This document shows, piece by piece, positions 10,912 through 47,076 of a stretch of 64,000 nucleotides of DNA. Each line of letters starts with the position of its first letter. The first letter of the stretch is position 1. A program made the translations under genes and the position numbers. The stretch is from Adineta vaga (lineage: Eukaryota > Animalia > Rotifera). A model generated the notes under the pieces. It was given only the letters and a program-made list of their open reading frames with translations, was not told where the DNA came from and searched no databases. Location: positions 8,990,001 to 9,054,000 of the forward strand of contig CP075495.1 of the NCBI GenBank assembly GCA_021613535.1, in the 5' to 3' direction.

Positions 10912-13303
10912 TTAGGAAGCGTTAGTATCGTTCTTTAATAGTCTTTGATATTCAAACATCGCATCTAATATTGTCCAAAGACAAGAACCTTCTGGATAAT
11001 CATTATCAACTAAATTCACCAGAAAATAACTATTGGCAATTTGCTCAATAACAGCATGTGAACGTGAGTCAGGTTCATACAATTTACCCCAACGTTCAGT
11101 CCATAAACTAAAAGCTTCATCCTATAGTCATGAAAACAAATTAATTTTCAGAAAATCAAATCTTTATTGTCTCTTACCTTCCAAATCATGAAACTAGTAG
11201 GATCAACAACAGTTGGTTGAATGATTTCTCGGCCTGTAAAGACACCCCATGTCACAGCTATGGGTTGTTCGTCAACATTATTCGTTTCATTGACTTCACC
11301 CTACAAACTTCGTGTAATGAAAGAAAATGAAATGAAAAATAATCTTACAGATTTATTCACAAAATGATAATTAACATTCGGAAAGTTTTTCAAAACACTG
11401 CGTAATGCTGAGATATTGTCAGCACTGGTAAAAAATTCCAAATATGCCTAGAAAAATGAAAATAATCTCTTTTTAACAGTGCATCAAATGCAAATTCTAT
11501 GCTCACTTTTTGATAAACATAACCATTGAGAGTACCCCAACCAACAATTGTATCAGAACTCGGTTTTCCATTGACTGCTGGTTGAGAATTAATTGTTAGA
11601 ATTCCACGTCGATTGAATTCAAGTAAATTGTTTTGAATCAATGATGTTTCCGATGACAATTCCTCATCTGTCCAAGGAAAATGACGAACAACTTTACCAA
11701 TATGATTTTTCTCTCCACCGATATAACAAGCAAACATCCGCCAAACATCTTCTTCACATGTCAATTCTCGTCCCCATTCATCAAGTAATTCATCACGTGT
11801 TGCATCGATCTTCATATAAAACAAATGATAATCAGTTAGCATACCAAATGAGGGTGCCGATGATAAACCCCAACGTCCATTAGGAAATTCATTCCAATTT
11901 GATGTTCGATGAACATAAGATTTTGGTCGTATACTCCAAAAGATAGGCCGAACATTTTCTTTTGAACGTGCAAAACTACTCGATGTTTTCTTCCATGGTA
12001 GAGCACGTAAGGGTTGTTCTTCTAACCAAAGACCGAGCTTTTTTAATATTTCAATTGTTGCAAATTCTCGATTTAATGTATAGAAATGTAGACCATAGAC
12101 TTTACCAGATTCTAATAATTCACGACATAAATCAAGACATGCTTGTACACCAAAATTTCGGATAGCTTCATCATTTTCTTTGATTGGTTCAATGCAAGCA
12201 AGAATTTCTTTGGGTACATCAAGTTTTGCTAATCGAACAATATTACGAAGACTTGCGTAACCCTAGAATTATCCTATTTTACTAAATTTACATGAAACAA
12301 ATTCGTTTACTTGAATTGGAAAGATGCCTGGGATAATTGGGCATGTAATACCTGCTGCTCGACAATCAGATTCAAATTTAATAAATGTTTCAGCTTGAAA
12401 GAAAAGTTGAGTAATGATAAAATCGGCACCACAATCGACTTTTTCTTTCAAATAACCAAGATCATCTTCATAGGATGTTGAATCTGGATGACCTTGCGGA
12501 TAACCTTGAATGAATACAATACAAACTTAACAATCTATGGAAAGAAGAGCATGTCATATACCAGCAACACAAATAACAAAATAATTTCCAAAATGTTCTC
12601 GAATAAATTTGACTAAATCAAGTCCATACCGAAAATCACTCTTACTCGGATCCCATTCTTCACCAACGGGAGGATCTAAAAAGAAATATATTTCTTTGAT
12701 ATTAAAATCTTTATTTTCTCCTATTTCAATTTACCTCCACGTAATGCTAATAAATTTCGAATACCAAAATCTTTAGCTTTATTAAGAAAAGTTAACATTG
12801 TTTCTCTTTTTGCTCCATAGCATGTAATATGTAACATTGTATCAATGCCACAATAGTTTAACATTGTATTAGCAATCATCATTGAACTTGTTTCTTTATT
12901 ACTTGCTGGATCACCAGCTGGATGCCAAGTTATATCACAGAACAGTGGTTGACCAATAGCCATTCGATCAAAACTAGTTTCCATGATGAAAATAAATATT
13001 CCAATCAAGACTGAATCAAATAACTTACCATCCGATTAAATTAGCTGCACCACTTGGTGTACGTGGTGGAAAAAATTCCAATGAGTACCAACGATCATTA
13101 CTTGCCATACGTTTCTCAATTTTTTCTGTTAAACTTACATATTTAGTCGCTTGAAGACAACACCCTTTAGCAGCTATATTGGCACCTTCACTCTCGGCAC
13201 GTTTCAAAGTCTGCATATTATGTTTTGTTTCAGGATCAATTTCATTATCGTACATATTGTGACTACTTGGAACGGTCTGATTTTCAGAATCTGTTCGTGT
13301 CAT
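10912..13303 (-). CDS. MTHFR: Methylenetetrahydrofolate reductase (eukaryotic type with C-terminal regulatory domain)
   Basis: [48 protein letters not shown] and AVTWGVF motifs across GT-AG spliced exons. Confidence 0.97.
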
Positions 13304-14510: not shown

Positions 14511-16611
14511 CTAAACTGAAATATCTATAACATCTTGCTCATCGGTTACATCAGAAAAAAGAACGTTGAAAACTTGATTGTAAAAGTTCGGATAGAAAGT
14601 ACAAGCACGATGACAATCGGGTGTGAAATTAATTTCTAATAATTTTGGTTGAACTTGATTATCAATCATTTCAAGCATTAAATCAGCAGCATACAATGCG
14701 CGAGATGAAATACATCCGTCAATACCTAAGGGTGGTTCTTCATGACTTGCACATTGAAATATTTCTCTAAACATTTGATATATACGTTGTTCAACAATAG
14801 ACCATGTTTCTTTATTTTGACCATATTGTTCATTATACATTGAAATAAATGTTTGACAATTCATTTGTCGAAGAAATGCATTCGGTCGATAATTCATCAC
14901 AGTAAAATGTGTTTCGTAATCATCGAGTTCTTTTAAAGAAAATGGTTTATTTGCAAAACGAAGCCAAAATATCTTATGAATATATAGTTTTAAAGGACGA
15001 ATACTTCGTAGAAGTAAAACATAACGAACATCAAATTTAACACCACCATCAATTTCCGGAATTTGCAATAATATCGGTGATGAAACATATTTGCAGGCTA
15101 TTTTTGGACCTGATTCAGGTAAACGAACGATCATATCAAATGAATTCGTTACTGACATATCAATCGAACGTGTTAAATTAATTGGCTTTATTATCCATGT
15201 ATTATCAAGATGTTGATCTTCACGATACTAATGTACAGAAAAAGAAATAATTGAAACAAAGATAAATCATAAAAAGAAATAATTAATACTTGAAAATAAA
15301 CAGCAAATTGTGCTAATTCATACGTTAGATTGAATGTTGTTGCTAACCATGGTGGACTTCCTTGAGAATCAATAAATAGATCAGTATCTGATGATTTTGA
15401 ACTAAAATGAAATCATCTTATTTGAATCCTAGATGAAATTATTTTTACCCAAATAATGTTTTCCATCTTCTTGCAACAAGTGATAATAATTCTTTGTTCG
15501 TAACGATATTTTCCAGAGGAAATTGATTGATTAATTTATCGCCTAATGTTTCATAACGAAAATCTTGTATTGGTTTCATTAAAAATAGTATATCAGCTTG
15601 ATCAGGATTATCAACTAATTGATAATGTGGATCATTTAAATGTTCTTTAACAAGATCATGATCGGTATATACTTTCCAAATATGATTTAGATCAATTTTC
15701 CTTGGTTTATTATTCCTTGGTGTTTTATCATATAAATCATTTTGATGACATTTCTCATAGATTTCAATATTATTTTCAAGTTTTTGATTGAATAATTCTG
15801 GATTAGTTTCGATTGTTAAATTTCGAAGAAATTGTTTTCGATTATTTATATGTCGCCATGGTAATAATCGAATACTTCGATCGAGTGTATCCTTATTATC
15901 GTAGACAAAATTTCGAAAAATTTCTGAATATGGTTGATCAATACGAACAATGGGATAGAAAATTGAAAACATTGTTTGAGTTGGTGCGAAGAAAAATGAT
16001 GTACAACACACATTTGCATTCGTACTTGAATGACGTATCGATGAACCTAATTCATCCATTATATACCTAGTAAATAATCAACCAACATTGTCTAATTCAA
16101 ATCAGATTCATTCAACCTACCAATACGGTTCATAGACTTCTTCACAATCCTGTTGAGGATTGATTTGTGTTGATGTTAATGTATATGTTTGATTATATTT
16201 CCACATACGTTGTAAGATAACTTCAATTCCATCTTCTTTCGTGTCTGTATCAATATTCATTAATGATGCCATACGTTCATATAAACTTGGTATATTTATT
16301 AGATTACTTCTTGCATCTTTTATTCGATATGTCCATGCATGATCAATAAGAAATATAGCATTTTCATCTGTATGTGGATCGAGAATAACATTTTCTAATG
16401 TTGAAACATAATACCGTCGTTCACCATTGAATACATCATTTTCAATCTCATCATCATCCACCGGACATAATTGAAAATAGGAACCACTATCAAAGATTTC
16501 ATTCTTCATTTTTTCATATAAACGTCGATAAAGATGTTTGGGTATGTTATTCAATACAAGTTGAAATTCATGTATTCGAAGAAATTGTTCGTAATCATTA
16601 TCATCCGTCAT
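14511..16611 (-). CDS. TTLL12: Tubulin-tyrosine ligase-like 12 (SET-like + TTL-like)
   Basis: IFLIDHAWTY, MDELGSSIRHS, WIIKP, KFDVRYVLLLRS and LLEINFTPDC motifs typical of TTLL12. Confidence 0.93.
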
Positions 16612-24460: not shown

Positions 24461-26167
24461 TTATTCTTTTACTTGTTTAGTCGATTCACCTTCACTGGTC
24501 ATACGTTTTCGACCTTTTTGAGGTGCATTTGATGTTATGTCCTGATTGAGAATTTTCTTCTCTTCTAATTGTTTAAGAAGAGTTTGTAACTGATCATAAA
24601 CATTCGGAACATCTAATTGAATATCATCGATATCATCAAATAAACGTAACATGCCAGTTTTAAGTTGATCATAAGTAATCACAGCTGATTTAGTCAAAGG
24701 TTCAAGAAGACTTATCATTAATTGTTGCGCACTAGAAAAATAGTCATCAATGAAACAGATCAGCTTTTGTTTTTGAGTATGTACGATTATAACTCTTTAT
24801 AGAAAAAGTTTCACATCAATTGAAATACGTACCGTTCAGTATTTTTTTCCAAACAAAAGTCCATGAGTTCATAAACAAATTCATGAAAAAAATGTGGAAC
24901 ATTTAATTCTTTTAAACACCGAATTGTTTCAGCAGAATCACCACTATCATAATATTCACGTATAATTATATTCATTCTATCAGCTAATTCTCGTACTGGT
25001 CGAAATCCACCTAGAATATTACCGAATGAAAGATATTTTCTAAATTCATTGTCAATACATACTTGATTGAGCATTCCAAACGTTATTCAAAAAATAGAAA
25101 TCACCCATTGATACAAGTGTTTCAGCTTTATCTAAAGCTGCTTGCATTTTTGAACATTTTACATTGCCCTTAAATTGATTGAAATATTTTCCACCGGTAT
25201 TATCAATACATTTATCAGCAACTGAACGAGCAAGAAATTTACCTTGAAAAAAAGAAGAAAGAATTTTTCATGATAAACGAAATCGTTTTTTTTCATTCTC
25301 TTACCAATATCAGTTGAACATTCCGGATTATCAAGTGATAAATCATTTAATGACTCTAATAATGAATTAAAACCATTAATATAATCATTCGAACGTAAAA
25401 TAATGCCATTAAGATCATGTAATAAACGTGATATTAATTCTTTATGAACATTAGATTTTTCTAATGCTCTTGTTACAACATAAGAAATGAATTCTCCACC
25501 ACCACTTTGTTTAAAATCAAATTTTCGTAAACATTGAGCAACATCATTTGCATCACCATTAGCAAAATATTCATCAATCAATGGTTTAACATCTTTATCC
25601 ATACTTTCAATCAATTCTAATTTAGTGAATTTATTTTCTAATGATGATTTCGATGATTCAGCAATATGTTTGGCTTTTACTTGATTGTATTGTAAATCAG
25701 CTAAATCATCATCATCTAAATCTTCGTTATCTTCTTCAAGTAATTCAGAACCTAGTGCACCCCATGTGTATCCACCGCCACCACCGCCTTTCTTTGCTAA
25801 ACCACGACCTTTACCTAATTAAAAGAAATAATATTCATTTAATAGATAATTAAAAAAACAAAGAGAAAAAGAGAGAGAGAGAAGATGACAAACCTTGTCT
25901 TGATTTTCGATTATATTTCTTAGAAATCTTGGCATTCTTTTGTAATAAATGTCCATGAATATCTGTTGGTGAACCGACAACTTGTGTATTCGAATTGGAA
26001 CCTGAATTTCGACGTATTTGAACACGTTTTCGTTCAGATCCTGCTGAATTCGCATCACCACCACTAGCATTATTGTTAGTTGATGCCTTTCTGTCATCAT
26101 CTTGTGATGAACCTAATTGAGCGATTAAAGCATCTACTTCGGCTTTTTCTGTGGCCGATGAACTCAT
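24461..26167 (-). CDS. PDCD4: Programmed cell death protein 4 (two MA3 domains)
   Basis: RKSRQG|KGRGLAKKGGGGGYTWG, two MA3 repeats (LIDEYF...; IIREYY...LKELNVPHFFHEFVY...LDVPNVY) and C-terminal GRKRMTSEG. Confidence 0.95.
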
Positions 26168-35440: not shown

Positions 35441-36110
35441 TCATTATTTTCTAGAAGATCAAAAAGGACGAGATGAAATGCCAAATTCTAATAGAAAAAA
35501 AAAACCTTTGAACTACATCCAATACAGATTCGATCTATTATTAAGAGATTAGAAAAACGTCAAGGGGTTGGTCTACCTCGACTTGTTTATGATAATATTC
35601 GAGAAAAAGCGTCTGGCACTAACAATAATTCGGAAGATTAGAATAATCGATTGTTGGCCAGCCTACCCATCCTCAAATGTACGAGTTTGGTTGTCTTTTA
35701 AAAGGTGTACATAAATCTCAACAACATAAGTTCAAAAAAGCTCAAGTTGAAGTGACAACAAAGAAAAACCTGGTACGAAAAAAGGGATGAGTGATTTCTT
35801 TAATTAATCAGATAGTATGAAAAAGTAAACTTATAGAATTGTTCTCCTATTCTAATGTAGTTTTGCCATATTCTATTAAACAAACAATAACTGATAAATA
35901 TTTACTGCTTTAGATGTCATAATTGAATTATTAAGAAACAAATATAGATGAAACCATTGAGATTAGAGACAGGTTTCGTTTGATACTAGAGATATTTATT
36001 TTATGATCTGTGTGCTTGAAACTGATTGGAAGTTCTTTTCGCTTTCATAAAAATGAGGAAAAAAACCAAATAATGCAAATTAATGTTCAAGTAATATTGA
36101 TGAATGATCA
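35441..36110 (+). pseudogene. Diverged tandem copy of the mannosidase last exon and 3' flank (copy of ~35072-35350), split by an insertion
   Basis: 35441-35560 aligns by eye to 35072-35187, and 35979-36110 aligns to 35209-35350. The exon copy is frameshifted in an A10 run. Confidence 0.85.
35561..35790 (+). mobile_element. Degenerate Mutator-like (MULE) transposase fragment
   Basis: Translates as LVYDNIREKASGTNNNSED*NNR, then after a frameshift IVGQPTHPQMYEFGCLLK. This resembles the TNNxxEGWxNR...VGxxHPxxxxF..LK segment around the third catalytic residue of MULE transposases. It lies inside the insertion that interrupts the duplication. Confidence 0.6.
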
Positions 36111-36800
36111 CCATCGCATTCTTTATGCATACTTAAATCAATTTTTGGATGTTTTAAAAGTAATTTAACAATTTCAGTATTTCCTTTCGAACAACAACGA
36201 TCTAGTGGAGTTTGTTTATATTTATCTGTTGCATTGACATCAGCATCATGTTCCAGTAATAGTTGAGTTATCTAAAATGGACATTAACGATTTCACATAG
36301 ATTTTTTAAAATGTTTTACTTCATTAAAATTTTTTGAACATGCATAATGTAGTGGTCGAGCACCGGATGAATTGGATTGTTCAACATCGACTCTTTTAGT
36401 TTTTAAAAGCATTCGAACAATATCAAGATGACCTGTTGATACGGCAATCATGAGCGGTGTCCAACCAAGCTAAAAACAGGAATGTACATTTAAACTGATA
36501 AACAAATAATTTATATTATTCTTACCTCATCTGGAATATCTGGTCGAACATTACAGATTTCCAATAGATATTGCACTATATCTTTTGCTCCACTTGAACA
36601 AGCCCAATGAAGAATAGTTCGACCATCCTAATAATATTGGAAAAGATAGTTCACGTCATTTGGAGACTGAAAAAGAATGTCTTTACGCGATCTTTCTTTT
36701 TGAGACATTCTGGATCCGCTTCTATTTTTGCTTTCAGTTGATCGAATTGTTTATCATACGCTAAACAGCAAACTTCTAAATTAGATATTTTCATCTCCAT
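36080..36800 (-). CDS. PSMD10: Gankyrin (26S proteasome assembly chaperone), 4 exons, C-terminus apparently short; absent from the ORF track
   Basis: MEMKISNLEVCCLAYDKQFDQLK..., DGRTILHWACSSG, GWTPLMIAVSTG, GARPLHYACSKN, QTPLDRCCSKGN closely follow gankyrin ANK1-5. Confidence 0.9.
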
Positions 36801-36822
36801 TATTAATCTGAAAAAAAGAATT

Positions 36823-39218
36823 TTATGATGTTTTCTCCGAATAAAAACCGGTTAGACAATTAAATGAAAATGATATTAGAAGAGTCTGTTCATTCAATAA
36901 ATCTAAACTATCAAGTAAATAATGCCGAATAATTAACGTAGAATGTTCAAGTTTATCACTATTGATTGTTGAATGAAAAATCACAAAATAAGATTGATGC
37001 GTAGCACCAAGAAATGAATATTGTTCAAATTGATTACGAACAAAAACAAATATTATTGAAGACGGTTGTTCCTGCAGAAAATCTACAAAATTTAACGTCA
37101 TTGATGAATCTGGATTGTTTGTAATCGATTGTACTAATGGTGATGAAGATATGATTTTCAAACCAAGAGATCCAATAGGACGAATCTAACAAGAACGTTT
37201 CTTATAGTATCAAAATTCGACGTAATGTCTTACTGATAGATAGCCAAGTTTGATAATTGTATCTGTATTTTTCTCAACTCGAATTGATACGCTCGTTATT
37301 GACGTTCGTTCGTTGACTTCAAATCGATATGTTCTACAAAAACCAAGATAAAATCTTCAATGAATGAAAGAAAGCAGCTATTTTCATACTTTCGTTTCCA
37401 ATTGCGAATAATCAAATCTTCTTCGTACTTATCCAATTGAATCAATTTACCATCATCACATTCAAGTTCAGGCATCACATTATCATTACCTTTGTAAACA
37501 AAAGTCACATTCCAGATTGATTCGACTGGAACCAAACATTTAAATAATCTAATAAAGAAGAACTTCAAACTTTCGAAAGAACAATCAACGAAAATCTACT
37601 TGAAGTAGTCTTTCGTATCGCCTTTCAGTTCAAGATATGATCCACCAAAATATGCATCATCATGTTTGATTGACCATATATTTTCATTTGAACTATTCGG
37701 TAAATATGATTGTAAACTAAGATTATACCATGAATTGCTTGCCATTTCCTAAATGATTGTTCATAAAAATTTGTAAATTTGTAAATTCTTACTAGACCAT
37801 GAATAAAGAATTTTTCACCATAACCATCGGAGAAAAATGTTGTTAACGACTTTAAATGTAAAATACTTTGATTTGTATATGGTTCTAATAAATTCCAAAA
37901 TCTATTTTGATACGCGAAAAATTGTTTAATCTATTCATTTGAACAGTCTCACTTCTGATCGTTCTCAATAAATTGTTTTGAATCTAACGTTTCAAATAAC
38001 CACCCTGGCGCAAAAATGGCCGTGCTGAGATCAGTCGCGTGACATAATGACATTGCCTAGTGACGATCATGACTATGATAAAAACGCAAACATCAATAAA
38101 GATAACATACTTCACATGTATTGAACCCACCACCACCGAAACAGCCACGACCAAACACATCAATACCAACAAAAATGTCACGATAACGTTCCCCAGCATG
38201 GATTTTTGATTGTAGAAGCATATCTGATTTCCAAGTATAGTTTAAAAAAATTCCATCACAAGCTTCGAAAAATGGTCTAAATAATATATTGATTATTAAA
38301 AAATAATAGAATCATGTATATGAGATTCGAGATATATATATGTATGCAGAACACTGTTTGATCTTATTCACTATGTCTAAGATACCACGAGGCATCATGA
38401 AAAAAAGGAACATATTCTTACTGATTTAATTCATTCAATTGATTTTGCCATTTTAAATCGCCATCAGTCGTTACACTGTCATACCAAAGAACGATACTAT
38501 TTCGATCAATTTCTGAACAAGCTAATTTCAGTTTAGAAACAAATGTAAGAAGACGTTCGACATGTTCTTTCTAAAGATAACGACTAACATTTTTTCACAC
38601 ATGACAATAAAATCAACATACATCTACTGGATTTTCTATATTCAATAAATATCCATCAAAACTATACCAATTCATTAATAATGCAAGTGCTTCAACTACT
38701 CGATCAACAATGTCATCAGACGCCAATAACTGACAACAGATTTCTTTTCCAGTATCGAATTCAGTTATAAATGTACCTAAAAATAAAAATTCAATGTTTT
38801 CAAAAATAATAAACATTCTGAAGGGTATATCAACCAAGTATTTGAACACCATTCTTATGCGCAGAATCAATCCAAACTAATGGTGGTATAGTTACAAGTT
38901 CATGAGCAAAATAGACAAATATATCAATTAGATGCCATCGAAAAAAACGATAACACGGTTCATTTGTTTGACAACCTTGTATATGTCTGCAATTAAACAA
39001 ATATAAATAAGAATACATATCGTATTAACATACTTATCCTCTAAATAACCACCTTTCATATCATGACAAAGTAAGATTTTTTGTCGTGGTGACGTATAAC
39101 GTGAGACAAGTTGTGAACATTTCAAACGATTTGTTAAACAGGATGATGATGATATATTTAGAAGATCAGTAAGATTTTTAATAGGCGAACATATTGTTGA
39201 AATTTCTTTCGATGACAT
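36823..39218 (-). CDS. ENGASE: Cytosolic endo-beta-N-acetylglucosaminidase (GH85)
   Basis: LLCHDMKGGYLED, IDIFVYFAH, AHKNGVQILG|TFITE, catalytic FDGYLLNIEN (N-x-E), VLWYDSVT, CDGIFLNYTW, VFVGIDVFGRG, AIFAPGW, WYNLSLQ. Confidence 0.95.
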
Positions 39219-39489
39219 CTAAAATAAGATGCGTTTTACAAATGAATGATCACAAACTGACATTCCTATAATTACAATTTTGACTTCGGTGTCCATATTT
39301 TTCTTTCTAACTAGTTATTCTTAGATTTTTGTGAATATTCTCATTGTCTGTTGAAACAATAAAACTAAGAGAATTTGATTACATTCTTATTTTTTGTTTT
39401 AATATTTTTCATATGAAACCATTGATACAGAACATGAGAACGCACATATTACGAAAAGAAAAAGAAAAGAGAGAGAGAGAGACATATGA

Positions 39490-42400
39490 CTAGGTTTTAT
39501 TGTCTAATTTTCGTCGTTTAACTGCTGCTGTTGTTGTTGTTGTTGTTGTAGTTGCTGATGTAGATGAAACTGGTGCTGGTGGTAGAGAAACAGAATTTCC
39601 ATTTTCAAATCGATCAACAAAAGTTTTATTATTCGTATATAATTGTTCATGTTTATGAATACAAACAATCAATGATTTAATTGTTGATTTAGATAATGGA
39701 ATATTCAATGGACTATCATCAATTGTTAAACAATCTTGTAATTCATCTTGATCAGATTTACTTTCTTGATTATGATTTGAATGATTTTCTAATAAGACTT
39801 GTAAATGTTGCAAGATATATTTCAAACCATTTTCATTTGCCATTTTAATTGTACCAATTTTATAATCAACTTTTTGTTTTGTTGGATCATTTTCACGTTG
39901 TATCCATTTTTGTAAGATTCGTTCTAAATGACGCCAAAATATATCATGATGCTGTTCATGCCAAAGAAGACAGAGTTGTTCCGAGAAATTCTTCGTTAAT
40001 TCATGTGCAAATAAACAACAAACAAGACCATATGTTGGAACTTTTGTTTTCAATATATCGAACACATTGGCTAATGCAATCGTATTTCGATATGTTTTAT
40101 AATGAATTGATTTTGCAAGACGTTGTTCACCAATAACAGATTTTGTTTGATTCAGTAAATGTTCAATAATATTTGTAAATAATTGTTCATACTCATTTTG
40201 AACAAAATCATGAGCACCTAATAATTTCCAAAAATCTTCTTGTTCAATTTGAGAAAATAATAATGTTTGATCAACAATCGAATAGAGTTTATGGGAATTA
40301 AATAATTGTAGACGATGTTTGAGTATATCTAACATAAATTGTTCTAATTCAAATTGATTGATAGTATGTAAGAGAAGACGAATTAATTTGATGTTATTGA
40401 AAACCTTTTTCGAATAAAGACGATAAATATAAGAAAATAAATAAAGAAATGTTTCGGTATCATCTTGTTCACAATGTGTTAAGATTTCATGAAGAAAATC
40501 AATAAAATCTTGATCATAGGTAGGCACTTTTGCTGGAGGAATGGCTAATCTATGAGAGGAAAAGAATTAAGCAAACTATGATTAAAAATGAGAGTATTAC
40601 AAATCAAATATTTACTTTCGATGACTACTACTCAATTTAATAATCTCTTTGGCAAATTTGTCAAAAATTTCTGCTGCTATTTTAACATCATCAATATCAA
40701 TAGAGAGATAATACAGAAATATATAAGCTAATTCTGGTTGAAAGAAATACATAGCTTGAATAAGTTTAATATAAACATCTTGATTCTGTAGATCATCTTT
40801 AATACAACGAAATAAAACACATATCGATGTTTGTTGTATTGATCGTTTGAGTTTTTGAGAGGATATATTACGAAAATCATTTTCTAACATAGAATTATTC
40901 TTATTTGTTTGTAAAATTCTGAGCGAAGGTAATAAACGATTATGAAATGAATCACGAAATATCCAAAGACATAGAAGAGCATGAACAATCGTTTGTTCAT
41001 CAAATATTGTTAATAAACGTGACTGAAATTTAACACTTGTTTTTTCATATTTTATCATGGCATATGAACTTATCGGTCCAGCAGGATCACTAGCTTGAAT
41101 TTGAAAAACTAATGGACGTTTATCACTTAAAGATAAAACAATTTGTTTGCATATTTGTACTAGTAGAGATGTTTTATTTCGATTTGTTGAAATAGAATAA
41201 GATAAAGCTAATTGTTGAAGTTGATCATTAATAAATGAACGAAATCGATCAAATGGAAAATTTGTTCGACTTACATTTGTATTATATACACTATTCAGTG
41301 CTTTACTCTCATCATTAATCATTAAAATATCATCATCGTCATCATCATCATAACCCTGATCTAAGATTTTCTGTGAATTCAATTGATTTTCATATTCATC
41401 ATCATCTTCATCATCAGAAAATCGTGGTGCTGCAGTAGCATTCGCAGACATAATCATTATATCATTCGATTCTTCATCATTGTTAATTGGCATCGCTGCA
41501 TTTGGATTGATATCATCATTAATAGTTATTACTTCATCATTGATAGGCGCACCTAAAACCAAGAAAAACTCAAGATATTGTGTATCAAATTTGATCTTAC
41601 TCGTAGTTGAAGATGGTAATGATAATGTAAAAAAAGTTACTAATAAACGTTGATATGTATCTCGATCATGTGTAAACATTTGTAATAATTGTTGTGAATT
41701 TAAAATTGGTACTCGTTGAAAGAAGTCGAGAAATAATCGTGCGATATTTTGTTGTAAAAATAATTTCAAAGATGAAATCAAATTTTCTGATGTATACAAT
41801 AGAAATAATAACATTTGCTTTGCATAATAATATGATACAGTTAATAGATGATATCCGACAATAGTTGAATTCATTTGTACATCAAATTCATTTGTCATCG
41901 GTTGACAACTATTCATATCAAAGAAGAACCAATCATAATAAATCGCTAAACGACATTGTACAATCTGTTCATTGATTTGTATCAATTGTGGTGATGATGA
42001 TGATAGAACTGCAGCCGCATTCATTGCTGTTTGACTGGCTGACATAATTGTTTGTTGTAAAGCTTGTTGATAATTATATAATTGTGTTAATAACCATGCT
42101 ATAAATGACCAACGAGTTATTCGATTTATATTCATTTGATTCCGACACACAACACAAACATAACGAATTATATGTGAACATAGATAAATTGAATCAGGTT
42201 GTTGTTTAAAATTTAAATATTGATTTTGAAACCATTCGAAATAATATTTCTCTTGACTATTGGTTCGACAATTATCGAGAAGAAATTGAAGATGTTTTTC
42301 AAGATTAAATGATAATGGTAATGCAAGATATTTAGGTTCAGTCTGTAAAGCAAGAATTTTTGGTAGAAAATCATTTGATGTATTTAATGATAAATGTTTA

Positions 42401-43119
42401 AGAAATGCATCTATTTCTCGTATATGTCCTAATTGTATTAATAAACGAATTGAATCACGACCAATACAATGAATATTTTCACGTGTTAAATTTAATATAA
42501 ATTCAATATGTCGTTGTTGTTGTTGTTGTTGAGGTTTTCGACGAATATATATTGGAAAGATTGAAAGAAATGTATAAATTGTTAATAATTTCATTTCGGG
42601 ATATGTTTTTAAAAATAACGGATAAGCACCAAGAAATTCAATAATTGTTTCACATAAATCCATACATTGTTCATGAGGATTAATTTGTCGTAAGAAAACA
42701 TAATAGAGACGATCGATACCATCAATATTTGCTGCTAATGTTTCACGAAGAAACCATAATAATTGTTGACGAACATTTTCATAAAATCGACGCCAATTTT
42801 TTGTTATTAAAGCTTCAAGTATCGAAATAATCGACGAAAGATTAGTACCATTTAGAGCAAGTAGATCTTGAAAACATTTAGCTTTGCTATTAATATCAGT
42901 GAGTATTCCATAGAGAAGTGCATGTGATATATGTTCTTTAGATTTTTTATTTGTTTGACCGATTTGAACAAGAATATCGGAATCGATTGTATAACGATTT
43001 TGATGTATAGCAGTAAAACATGATTCTAAATATGAATCATTTGGATCTTTTAATTCAATTTGAGTATATTGAATAAGTTTAGACTCAGGAGCTATGAGTT
43101 TTATATTATTTGTAGCCAT
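39490..43119 (-). CDS. INTS3: Integrator complex subunit 3 (SOSS-A), divergent; introns at ~41600-41553 and ~40615-40549
   Basis: ISHALLYGIL, IGRDSIRLL, YFEWFQNQYL, IIRYVCVV, RWSFIAWLL, LAIYYDWFFF, AAPRFSDDEDD and ELAYIFLYYL match INTS3 N- and C-terminal motifs. Confidence 0.85.
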
Positions 43120-43543
43120 TAATTTACCTAATTAAATTCACAGAAAGAAAGACTTCATTGAAAAACACTATGTGTCAGAGAGCTGATCTAGAAAAACAGA
43201 CATTTCAAAATTTAGCTATAGGTTTTTTTGTCTAATGAAATCGACTTCTTTTCATTTTAATGATGAAAACTATGTGGTAGATGACAATACATCAATGAAT
43301 GACATGAGACACAGAGGGCGTCCTTATACGATTCCTAAAGGGAGAAAACAGAATTTTTAAACAAAAGACGAAATTGTACAATTCCATCAGCATGTCACAT
43401 TCAGGAAAATTCTCGTTATTTCTTTGTCTTATTTATTCTCATCGAATATATATTTTTGTGAAAGTTAGTTTTTACAAGATAAACAAAAAGAATTTGAATA
43501 CGTAACCAACAAAAGATTTTATTTAACAAATATAGAACATTGA

Positions 43544-44701
43544 TTAAGGTGCTTGAAGTTTAGATGCAAGTGTAGGTTCAGCAGTCCAACTTTGTTCAAC
43601 AGTCATTTTCACGCGTTTCTCATATTCACGACGATTAGTTTGATAAAGATTCGCTGCTTCAGAATTGGCTGGTGACGAAACATTTGGTTCATCGAGTAAT
43701 GACTGAAAATTATTCGAAAAAAAAACAAACATTAATATTCTTATTTATTATTCATTTGAATTGTTTACTTGAATCGAAGTGAGAATAGCTGAAACATCAT
43801 ATGTTGGTGACCAACGATTTTGAAGAATATCAAGGCAAATTCCACCATCACCATAGACTATTCTCAAAAAATAGTAATAAATGGAAAAACGATTAACTAA
43901 AGTATTTTACCATTTGGATGAAACATTTTTGATGTAAATCGAACAGATGGTGGTTTATTTGGATAAGATTCTGTAAATTCTAAGAAATCAATATAAACAT
44001 AGACATTCAAATCATTCTTATGCAAAGAATCTTTCAATATAGCCTTGAGTTTTCCTATGAAAAGGACAGAGATTTACTAAGCTCGAGATATTCGATGAGG
44101 AGATTGTATCCAGAACGAGTTATAATCAAATAAATCATATTTGATTAGTTGTCATTTATAGATAAATAAAGGATATTTTTAACTGAATTATGTGTATTCT
44201 TTATCAGAAGAAAGCAAGAAGAAACAATTAGATTACTCACAGATTTTGTACGAAAATTTATAGATCAACTTCAACTCAGTTAGTTTTAAAAATAGCAACA
44301 GGAAATTAAAACTTCTATCTGTTAGTTTTCCTTTACGAATATTTCTCTTCAACATATAATAATCAATAATTTCACAGATCAATGTTTCGTTGTTTTTTTG
44401 ACCCTTTTGTTTGCAAAAACATACCTAATAATAAACGAAATGTTCCATCTTCAAATGGTGTATCATTTGGTCTAAACAAAAGAAGCGAAAATTTTTTCTT
44501 TTCAATCCAAAGATTTTCTACTTACCCGAGAATAAAAGCATGCCAGATAAGAATATTATCATCGGAAGGTACAGCAGCAATACCAGCTGGCGGATCTTTT
44601 TGTAATCTATAAAAGAAAAGAAATTTTCAATCGAATTAATTCAATTATTGAACTTACTGTTTAAAATCTCGCATCAAACGTAAACGAGATGGAGTTGACA
44701 T
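43544..44701 (-). CDS. UBE2A: Ubiquitin-conjugating enzyme E2 RAD6 (UBE2A/B)
   Basis: [38 protein letters not shown]|[37 protein letters not shown]. Catalytic Cys present. Confidence 0.97.
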
Positions 44702-44790
44702 TCTTTTTTTTCTCAAACAAAAAAAATTATCTGAAAAAAAAAATCATATTTCTGAGATTCTCTTTCTTTTCACAAAAAGCAAATATTTAA

Positions 44791-46358
44791 TTAAACTCTT
44801 CCACGAATTTTATGATGCCTAAAAGAAAACCAATTCAATTCAAAAATACATGATCAAAAAAAACAAACCATTCATATTTTGCATCTTTCAACCAACGTTG
44901 AAATATTGGTGTTAAATAATTTCCTAGAATAATCTGCATTGGATGATAGATTAACAAAGGTATCGTTATAGAACTATTATCAGGAAAGATTGTTTGTAAA
45001 ATAGGCATTCCTATATACATATGAACATGAAGTATTCATCATATGAAATTGCATTGATAATCTACCTGTTGTTAATGACTTTTGACTACCGCAGAATATA
45101 ATTGCAATTGTATCACTTGGACGGATATGAATTTTTTGACAAACAAAAAAAAGAAGACCTATTAAGAACATTTGAATACTAAAAACTAAAATCAAAGAAA
45201 AGAAAAGAAAAAAACAATTCAAAATAACGATGAAATGAGTATTTACTTGTAATAAGTAAAATCAAAAAACTAGTCAATGTTAAATTGATTGAACCACGTT
45301 GTTTGAATGTTTGACAAAATGTTGTATAGATATTCATTAACAATATCCAACTATATGAACAATAAAACAATATTTATCCGATTAACACACCGAATCGATT
45401 ACTTATTGATTGTATTCGAATATGGTAGTGTTCGATTCACAACAAATGGGAAATAGATACGTAAAAACTGTCCAATACCAATTGGTATTAAAATAGTACT
45501 TGAAAGTGATAATAAAACATGAATAAACGACTGTGAACTACTTGTAAATGATCCACCAAGCTATGGATGAAAAAATATATATTTCTATTAGATAGAAAAT
45601 TGGAACATAATTTTTATAATACCGAACCATGATATAAAGAAGAGTAGGCGTAAGTAGAGTACCTAGTAGACTACCAATCGTTGAATTTAACATAGCTATT
45701 GCCTAGAATAACAAATTAATAGCACAAAACATTTGTTTTTTTCCTCTTTTCTTTTTCATTCACTTCATTTCCACCGATAGCTCGAACAACAAAAGCTGCT
45801 GTAGAAACCGGTGATGGTAATGTACCTAACGCTTTTATTCTAGAAATAACGGTTCGAGAATAGTTAATGCTTAATGAATAGAAAAATGAGGAAACATGGA
45901 AATCCTACCCAATCGAAAGTTGATATTGATATGTTGATAATCGATAGACTGTTGATAGTATTAGAAAAAGAATTGGACAAATAAGAAATGAAAAGATTTG
46001 AATAGATAAATGAATGCGATACTGAAGAATGGTTTGATATAATTCCTATTAATTAAATCAAATAATTTGTTCACAAAAACTCAATAGTCATTTTTTTTGT
46101 TCTCACTTCACTTCGTATTGAACAACCATTGAGCAAAAAAATAATCATTGTTCCTAGAAATTTTACAGTTGATTCAGGTTTTAATGGACCTAGAAATGAA
46201 TGTTTTATAATCGATATTTATATATGATTAATTTGGATTAATTAATGACCTTCTTTTGAACCTAATTCTGGATAAATGAAAGCTAATAGAATTGAAAGAA
46301 AAATTCCATACAGAAACCAATATTTTGACAAGTGTGTTTTTCGATTAAGGACAAACAT
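44791..46358 (-). CDS. SLC10A7: Sodium/bile acid cotransporter family member 7 (SBF-like)
   Basis: KYWFLYGI...PELGSKEG|GPLKPE, LPSPVSTAAF...AIGGNE|AIAMLNSTIGSLLG, NIYTTFCQTF, IFCGSQKSLT, PLLIYHPMQIILG. Confidence 0.92.
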
Positions 46359-47076
46359 ATGTCTATATATATATATATATATGTATCTAAAGAATCTAAT
46401 GATAGAAGGCAATCAACAAAACAGCATGGCCAAAAAGACATTTATTTTAATAATTCATTTATTCTTTAAGAGAATCTTTCGTTGTTTGTTAGAAATAATC
46501 TCATTTCCAATCATCTCTCGTCTTGATGTTCTCCTGAGAGAGAGAGAGGGGGGAGAGAAAAGGAAAAGGATCAGCAGTCGAGAATTCAATATAATGAAAA
46601 AAAAAGAAAGAGAGAATAAGAGATCGACGACTGTTTAGTAATTCGGACCTGCGGACGTTTCCGCATATATATTTGCGTAGAATTTTTTTTCTTGTTCTTC
46701 TACTTCTTCATTTCTTTCTTTTCTTTGCTACACGAAGAAAGAAGAGAAAAACACTGATGTAATCAAATTGACTCAAGCGCTCCTTTCGCTATGGCTAGTG
46801 CGTTTTTCTCTTTTTTTTCTTCGTTTGTCACGCACTTCTAGAGGAAATGGATAGAGTGTCTATGTTAGTGCGACTGTTATTAAAATACATTGTGGAGCGA
46901 AGACATTTTGTTATCAGATTCTTTTGACTAATGAATACATGTAAACACGGGTAAGACTATGTTGTAAAATGATGAGTACTACTGAGTGAGAGATAATGTG
47001 ACCACATGTAACATAGTATAGTTCTTCTCTTTTATTTTTTTTTCTCTTTGAGTTCAGCCATCAATAATGCCGTAGA

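Follow-up and report, generated by a model that had tools for sequence, protein, structure and literature searches.

The subject of this analysis is a cluster of five minus-strand genes, in transcriptional order SLC10A7, UBE2A, INTS3, ENGase, and PSMD10, in a 64-kb window of the genome of the bdelloid rotifer Adineta vaga (C2:8990001-9054000; window GC content 30%, in a genome of 100.8 Mb in 6 pieces). An earlier reading of the letters alone (the sequence-only reading) had taken the five genes for a single polycistronic transcription unit resolved by spliced-leader (SL) trans-splicing. The reading that we prefer, and hold with about even confidence, is a conserved bdelloid gene block of two, perhaps three, transcription units, in which the two tight pairs, SLC10A7–UBE2A and ENGase–PSMD10, would be SL operons. 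Comparative sequence support for these two pairs appears good, while RNA proof is incomplete.

Spacer lengths and gene order among relatives

Recounted from our gene models, the stop-to-ATG gaps are exactly those first given: 89 bp for SLC10A7–UBE2A, 424 bp for UBE2A–INTS3, 271 bp for INTS3–ENGase, and 22 bp for ENGase–PSMD10. Contigs of relatives were found by exon queries in JGI, ENA, Logan, and NCBI, and the window exons were mapped onto them one by one. The resulting spacers fall into two classes, with ENGase–PSMD10 (21-71 bp) and SLC10A7–UBE2A (77-124 bp) set apart from the other two junctions (184-1329 bp). At both tight junctions, the ATG is always closely preceded by a strong acceptor. 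Gene order itself bore out the proposed cluster in part: all five genes follow one another in L015, partial order is found in L011, L016, L017, L018, L020, and L023, and the tight pairs are kept, with ENGase–PSMD10 also in this order in L007-L010, L012, and Rotaria socialis (L025), but the linkage of UBE2A to INTS3 is broken in L016 and L019.

The ENGase–PSMD10 junction

The shortest spacer is short throughout, at 21-71 bp in eight taxa. In A. vaga it measures 22 bp, in Rotaria socialis 51 bp, and in five bdelloid-like taxa (GC 24-45%) 21, 42, 50, 52, and 71 bp. Each spacer holds a pyrimidine tract and a CAG or TAG 0-12 nt before the ATG, and the acceptor of the window recurs in seven other taxa, so that the 22-bp gap, with both its tight spacing and its acceptor conserved, behaves as expected of an operon junction. 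A different arrangement is found in L019, the INTS3 of which is 60% identical to ours: ENGase is absent, PSMD10 lies 36 bp after the INTS3 stop behind the same acceptor, and an AATAAA overlaps that stop. Because PSMD10 stays close behind two different upstream genes, a PSMD10 promoter embedded in either of them would have been lost in the rearrangement, whichever order is ancestral, and co-transcription would have persisted. The L019 arrangement is the strongest argument for co-transcription of PSMD10. We consider it probable that ENGase and PSMD10 are co-transcribed, with PSMD10 as a candidate downstream gene that lacks a promoter of its own.

These data also bear on an alternative without any polycistrons, in which each gene of this compact genome would have its own promoter, for UBE2A and PSMD10 one embedded toward the 3′ end of the preceding gene, and in which the SL would replace short outrons or neighboring transcripts would overlap. 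The persistent proximity of PSMD10, whether behind ENGase or behind INTS3, counts against such a promoter. So does the conservation of the ENGase gene, in which the 3′ exons are the least conserved (50-63% amino acid identity, vs 75-94% for exons 1-8, in most taxa) and give no sign of an embedded conserved promoter.

The SLC10A7–UBE2A junction

RNA evidence came from assembled contigs of four runs from four studies, aligned to 39001-45000, a range that includes three of the junctions, with ENGase–PSMD10 outside it. All four runs proved to be spliced RNA assemblies, with joints at the UBE2A and INTS3 introns and at the last SLC10A7 intron. Contigs of SLC10A7 stop at 44735 (X13 and X14) and 44738 (X5), within the T tract of the spacer and 3-6 nt short of the UBE2A AG, so the branch site and pyrimidine tract of UBE2A lie inside the 3′ untranslated region (UTR) of SLC10A7. 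That the upstream RNA ends so near the acceptor again argues against a separate promoter for UBE2A. In five taxa, the spacer measures 89, 90, 102, 77, and 124 bp and keeps a T-rich CAG|AT acceptor, and the 89-bp gap, too, thus behaves as expected of an operon junction. An A/G-rich motif at 44768-44753, 22 nt upstream of the acceptor, is also conserved in an alignment of four taxa, with the L018 and L023 sequences compared as well; it ends in AATCTCA and is a possible branch site or 3′-end signal. On balance, we lean toward co-transcription of SLC10A7 and UBE2A.

An allelic synonymous single-nucleotide polymorphism (A/G on the minus strand) lies in UBE2A exon 1 at window position 44660, and the RNA assemblies of all four runs split at 44690. 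Because the polymorphism splits the assemblies there, the 5′ end of UBE2A cannot be read from contigs.

Upstream of SLC10A7, an inverted CCAAT-like ATTGG, an A/T-rich block, and a TTAG are conserved in the window, L017, and L020, and beyond them the same three sequences keep a divergent ankyrin gene. The GC-richer stretch that had been noted here is real, at 0.33-0.37 for 46.45-47.2 kb against about 0.27-0.31 elsewhere. We infer that the region at 46.4-47.3 kb is a divergent promoter region.

INTS3 and its upstream element

The next gap is of a different kind. In X5, a contig carries a 20-T loose end at 43416, which is a poly(A) tail and follows an AATAAA by 16 nt; in the other runs, the contigs stop between 43412 and 43422. 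From 43201 to 43400, RNA depth is zero in all four runs. A non-coding block, ACGCCCTCTGT ... ATTGAT, lies upstream, about 125 nt from the 5′ end of INTS3; it is found in the window, L015, L017 (with one core change), L018, L020, and Rotaria sp. Silwood2 L022, and is the sole exact copy in the 64-kb window. To judge from its conservation, this block is a candidate INTS3 promoter or regulatory element. Its core (ACGCCCTCTGTG) is GC-rich within a 30%-GC genome and may loosely resemble the CTCF core motif in reverse complement.

The 5′ end of INTS3 was also placed differently from what had been proposed. In X13 and X14 alike, the INTS3 contigs of 3.6 kb stop exactly at 43189, the A of an AG after a pyrimidine tract and 62 nt upstream of the AG first suggested, and TTCTAG|AT at this point is kept in L015, L016, L017, and L023. 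With the RNA 5′ end at 43187-43189, the exon start expected near 43127 does not hold, its AG (43128) falling inside the 5′ UTR. The end could be either a trans-splice acceptor or a sharp transcription start, as the sequence also fits an initiator (YYANWYY); an acceptor is favored because two assemblies end at the same AG, as they would at a graph branch at an acceptor.

Among relatives, the UBE2A–INTS3 spacer varies widely (424, 357, ~390, 1329, 268, and ~860 bp). Neither UBE2A nor SLC10A7 was found within 3.4 kb upstream of INTS3 in L016 or within 1.9 kb in L019, and the open reading frames (ORFs) upstream of INTS3 in these two contigs matched no Pfam family. At least two promoters are indicated, because the INTS3 upstream block is conserved and INTS3 stands without UBE2A in L016 and L019; a single promoter for the whole cluster is not supported by these indirect signs.

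These results bear most directly on the single five-gene operon, in which one promoter upstream of SLC10A7 would yield one precursor, with SL trans-splicing at four junctions. The genes do share a strand, their order is kept in L015, the GC-richer region exists only upstream of SLC10A7, SL genes exist in the genome, and a short-lived precursor would be compatible with a spacer that shows no steady-state RNA. Set against this are the mapped UBE2A poly(A) site together with the zero RNA depth at 43201-43400 in four runs, the block conserved upstream of INTS3 in Adineta-like and Rotaria contigs, the 268-1329 bp spacer, the INTS3 loci without UBE2A or SLC10A7 upstream, and the proposed INTS3 acceptor that lies within a 5′ UTR. 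The claim of one polycistronic unit is unsupported in the face of this evidence. We regard a five-gene operon with a single promoter as highly improbable, and co-transcription across the UBE2A–INTS3 gap, from which such an operon would follow, as very doubtful.

The INTS3–ENGase junction

Spacers at this junction measure 271, 184, 237, 280, 538, and 1141 bp across taxa, and an AG directly precedes the ENGase ATG in all six (AG|ATG). ENGase contigs begin at 39218 (X1), at 39220 with 7 unaligned letters (X13), and at 39190 (X14). The ENGase leader must come from elsewhere, because the mature mRNA has no colinear 5′ UTR and the AG adjoins the ATG in six taxa. An X13 contig at 39295-39449 reaches 100 nt beyond the INTS3 ATTAAA, and from 39221 to 39294 depth is zero in all four runs. 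In L015, where the spacer is 184 bp, conserved 3′ UTR or acceptor sequence takes up about 135 bp, and nothing like a conserved promoter block was seen. The 1.1-kb spacer of L018 was counted against co-transcription of INTS3 and ENGase, which we put forward tentatively, as somewhat short of an even prospect.

A cis-spliced source of the leader was also considered. One non-coding first exon with one promoter could be joined alternatively to the ENGase and PSMD10 acceptors (or to those of SLC10A7 and UBE2A), as at the cholinergic ChAT/VAChT locus. Acceptors directly before ATGs, an ENGase mRNA without colinear 5′ UTR, and the 7 unaligned letters in X13 would all agree with this. The joint table of the four runs, however, has no upstream-exon joint to 39218 or 44730, and the genome has an abundant trans-spliced leader with no SL-like sequence in the window. 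A shared cis-spliced exon is accordingly extremely improbable.

At the start of the INTS3 3′ UTR, a stretch of ~90 nt (window 39395-39489, minus strand) is conserved in sequence, with the core TTCTCATGTTCTGTATCAATGGTTTC, and can be recognized in six taxa, some of them with 45% GC. No conserved fold was found in this block by RNAalifold, and it may thus serve as a binding site for a protein or small RNA.

Spliced-leader genes and acceptor signals

Knowledge of SL trans-splicing in rotifers dates back to 2005. We took the 23-nt rotifer SL sequence from PMC3795323 and searched the genome for variants within 1 mismatch, which returned 42 copies with the same exon; a GTAAAT donor directly follows each copy inspected. 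SL trans-splicing, on which the sequence-only reading had relied, is thus at hand, and the SL copies mark the genome as that of a bdelloid, in keeping with A. vaga. No second, operon-specific leader was found among the 42 copies, the search being limited to variants within 1 mismatch, and no SL-like sequence was found in the 64-kb window. Many copies are paired head to head, with about 130-155 bp between their exon starts, and there are clusters on piece C5; example loci are C1:2551160-2551336, C5:9884356-9925969, and C5:10912931-10934587. The first base of the SL exon is T in the genome and G in the published SL.

An acceptor had been claimed before each ATG, in the form of a YAG. The AGs do stand where they were placed, 4 (SLC10A7), 29 (UBE2A), 8 (INTS3), 0 (ENGase), and 7 nt (PSMD10) upstream. 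Of all the ATGs that the window contains, however, 46-48% have a YAG 0-29 nt upstream, and only 5% have one after at least 8 of 10 pyrimidines. UBE2A (10/10 pyrimidines), ENGase (8/10), and PSMD10 (10/10) have strong sites of this rarer kind. The AGs proposed for SLC10A7 and INTS3 have 5/10 pyrimidines each, and neither is the one conserved or used; the conserved acceptor-like AG is at 46388-46387 for SLC10A7, and that of INTS3 is at 43189-43188.

Proposed transcription units and points against them

Under the preferred reading, SLC10A7 and UBE2A would make up unit 1, with transcription from the divergent promoter region, and unit 2 would start at INTS3 with its own conserved upstream element. 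ENGase–PSMD10 would either belong to an INTS3–ENGase–PSMD10 unit or form a separate one beside INTS3. At the two tight junctions, which leave no space for one, the downstream gene would lack a promoter, and RNA polymerase would read through from the upstream gene. Cleavage and polyadenylation of the upstream mRNA would then take place only a few nucleotides from the 3′ splice site of the downstream gene, and the 23-nt rotifer SL would supply the downstream mRNA with both cap and 5′ UTR. SL addition would be expected at 44730, 39218, and 36807, each following co-transcription with the gene upstream.

Several observations weigh against this reading. Among the listed contig pieces and loose ends of the four runs, neither SL letters nor a junction-bridging contig was found, though the absence of bridging contigs proves little because contig assembly drops rare precursors. 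Two scans of JGI metagenome contigs for an SL joined to the 5′ ends of PSMD10 or UBE2A gave 0 matches, in a collection in which rotifer transcripts may be scarce. Differences between strains, rather than SL, could account for the 7 unaligned letters where ENGase begins. At UBE2A, no contig in any run covers 44691-44734, which includes about the first 40 nt (depth bins recomputed from listed pieces), and contig depth is 1.5-10 times that of SLC10A7, a kind of depth that cannot rank genes. Finally, microsynteny is general at this locus: gene order alone is weak evidence because opposite-strand neighbors, a convergent GH38 gene and the divergent ankyrin gene, are syntenic too. The informative signals are the difference in spacer-length class and the behavior of PSMD10.

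Some of these points would suit separate promoters for all five genes, namely the lack of bridging RNA and the greater contig depth of UBE2A. An SL acceptor is also not specific to operons, since over half of bdelloid mRNAs reportedly carry the SL. In addition, neither operons nor polycistronic mRNAs had been reported in rotifers as of Wenzel et al. 2021 (PMC7986045). Weighed with the PSMD10 spacing, the ENGase 3′ exons, and the SLC10A7 RNA ends, we consider it unlikely that the cluster contains no polycistrons.

Gene models, identities, and neighboring features

Exon models were set by coordinates and checked for an open frame, and Pfam was run separately on each exon. The five expressed minus-strand genes and the names given to them were confirmed by exon-wise Pfam and PDB matches; for the first exon of PSMD10, the PDB matches were PSMD10/gankyrin chains only (E 0.02, weak but specific). 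All introns of the five models are GT..AG and 44-145 nt long, apart from one of 445 nt. The last SLC10A7 intron is backed by an RNA joint (44817/44868), and all five UBE2A introns are present as RNA joints in the runs used. Expression of INTS3 is evident from RNA joints and the 3.6-kb contigs. This gene has an extra in-frame intron of 48 nt (41551-41598) that is removed in the RNA of three runs; it had been missed in the sequence-only reading and by plain ORF reading, and the ORFs of relatives break at the same spot. The coordinates of all features are collected in Table 1.

Table 1. Features of the five-gene cluster, in window coordinates and in order of transcription
Feature	Position	Strand	Details
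SLC10A7 upstream region	46387..46515	minus	Inverted CCAAT-like ATTGG 46511-46507; A/T-rich block about 46446-46436; TTAG acceptor-like, exon start 46386
SLC10A7-like (SBF-like transporter) coding sequence	44791..46358	minus	10 exons, 343 amino acids; Pfam SBF_like on exon 9
SLC10A7–UBE2A spacer	44702..44790	minus	89 bp; A/G-rich motif ending AATCTCA 44768-44753; T10 tract; AG 44732-44731, exon start 44730
RAD6-type ubiquitin-conjugating enzyme (UBE2A/B-like) coding sequence	43544..44701	minus	6 exons, 162 amino acids; Pfam UQ_con
UBE2A 3′ UTR	43412..43543	minus	AATAAA 43437-43432; poly(A) site about 43416
Non-coding block upstream of INTS3	43289..43325	minus	ACGCCCTCTGT ... ATTGAT; candidate promoter/regulatory element
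INTS3 5′ UTR	43120..43189	minus	Acceptor-like TTCTAG, AG 43189-43188, exon start 43187
INTS3 coding sequence	39490..43119	minus	3 exons; introns 41551-41598 and 40550-40615; Pfam Ints3_N and HEAT_Ints3_C
INTS3–ENGase spacer	39219..39489	minus	271 bp; ATTAAA 39403-39398; AG 39220-39219 directly before ENGase ATG
GH85 endo-beta-N-acetylglucosaminidase (ENGase) coding sequence	36823..39218	minus	11 exons, 596 amino acids; Pfam Glyco_hydro_85 on three exons
ENGase–PSMD10 spacer	36801..36822	minus	22 bp; T-rich tract, AG 36809-36808, exon start 36807
PSMD10/gankyrin-like ankyrin protein coding sequence	36080..36800	minus	4 exons, 185 amino acids; Pfam Ank families

The long intron is UBE2A intron 3 (43980-44424), at 445 nt against 44-70 nt for most introns of the cluster and about 50-245 nt for its counterpart in relatives. 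Near 44125-44200, it has a short stretch in common with the transcribed locus C4:10610636, which may reflect the insertion of a small repeat. Contigs with loose ends at 43159 and 44125 were considered for alternative 5′ exons and rejected as spurious matches, since the transcripts map to piece C4 and have only about 20 nt in common with the window. A 93-amino acid read-through ORF of the L015 UBE2A, used as a query, returned general eukaryotic RAD6 proteins and no full-length bdelloid protein.

No second (ohnologous) copy of the cluster was found in the same genome with INTS3 and the last ENGase exon as queries, and Rfam gave no match over 35.5-47.5 kb. A scan for bacterial promoters and terminators stayed at chance level, its bacterial models not being relevant to this eukaryotic locus. 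Elsewhere in the window, minus-strand ORFs with SET_TTL and TTL domains (14511-16611) are exons of one TTLL12-like gene; the long minus-strand run that holds this gene also has MTHFR_C (11393-11842) and an MA3-domain exon (25162-25614).

Comparison with known operons

Taken further, the data raise a broader proposal, to which we give slightly less than even credence: that bdelloids have tunicate-style operons, in which PSMD10 would be a promoter-less passenger 21-71 bp behind any preceding gene, ENGase would have entered, or been lost from, an INTS3–PSMD10 operon in the course of rotifer evolution, and poly(A) site and acceptor would share the same few nucleotides. The conserved tight pairs, with their defined junctions, are concrete and testable loci for the question of whether rotifers use operons, and rotifer operons would bear on the origin of operons in Gnathifera (rotifers and chaetognaths), by inheritance or by convergence. 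For annotation, spacing alone is insufficient to call a same-strand cluster one operon; here, spacer conservation and upstream blocks split the locus into units.

In tunicate operons (Ciona and Oikopleura), a single SL class serves monocistronic and downstream genes alike, the operons combine housekeeping genes that are unrelated to one another, and the intercistronic region is very short or absent. The SLC10A7 contigs that end 3-6 nt from the UBE2A AG and the 22-bp ENGase–PSMD10 spacer are similar to this. Unlike in tunicates, we are dealing with another phylum and an unrelated SL sequence, and SL addition and precursor RNA are inferred here. Operons of C. elegans are either of SL2 type, with a spacer of about 100 nt and a U-rich element, or of SL1 type, without a spacer, and their downstream genes lack promoters. 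The cluster shares with them same-strand organization and conserved tight linkage; the 77-124 bp SLC10A7–UBE2A spacer with its internal motif resembles the SL2 type and the 22-bp spacer the SL1 type. It differs from the SL2 type in that one exon sequence is found across the 42 SL copies (search within 1 mismatch).

In the chaetognath Paraspadella gotoi (PMC12460157), for which there is genome-wide read-level SL evidence, SLs are not operon-specific, and operons were called at spacers <250 bp and are enriched in housekeeping, ubiquitin, and proteasome genes. That 2025 paper names rotifers only loosely among operon lineages. By the <250-bp rule, two of the four A. vaga spacers pass (89 and 22 bp), while 271 bp is borderline and 424 bp fails. 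As in the operons of this gnathiferan relative of rotifers, the cluster contains a ubiquitin E2 and a proteasome chaperone. By analogy, the layout seems closest to tunicate operons and nematode SL1-type operons, with chaetognath operons nearest phylogenetically.

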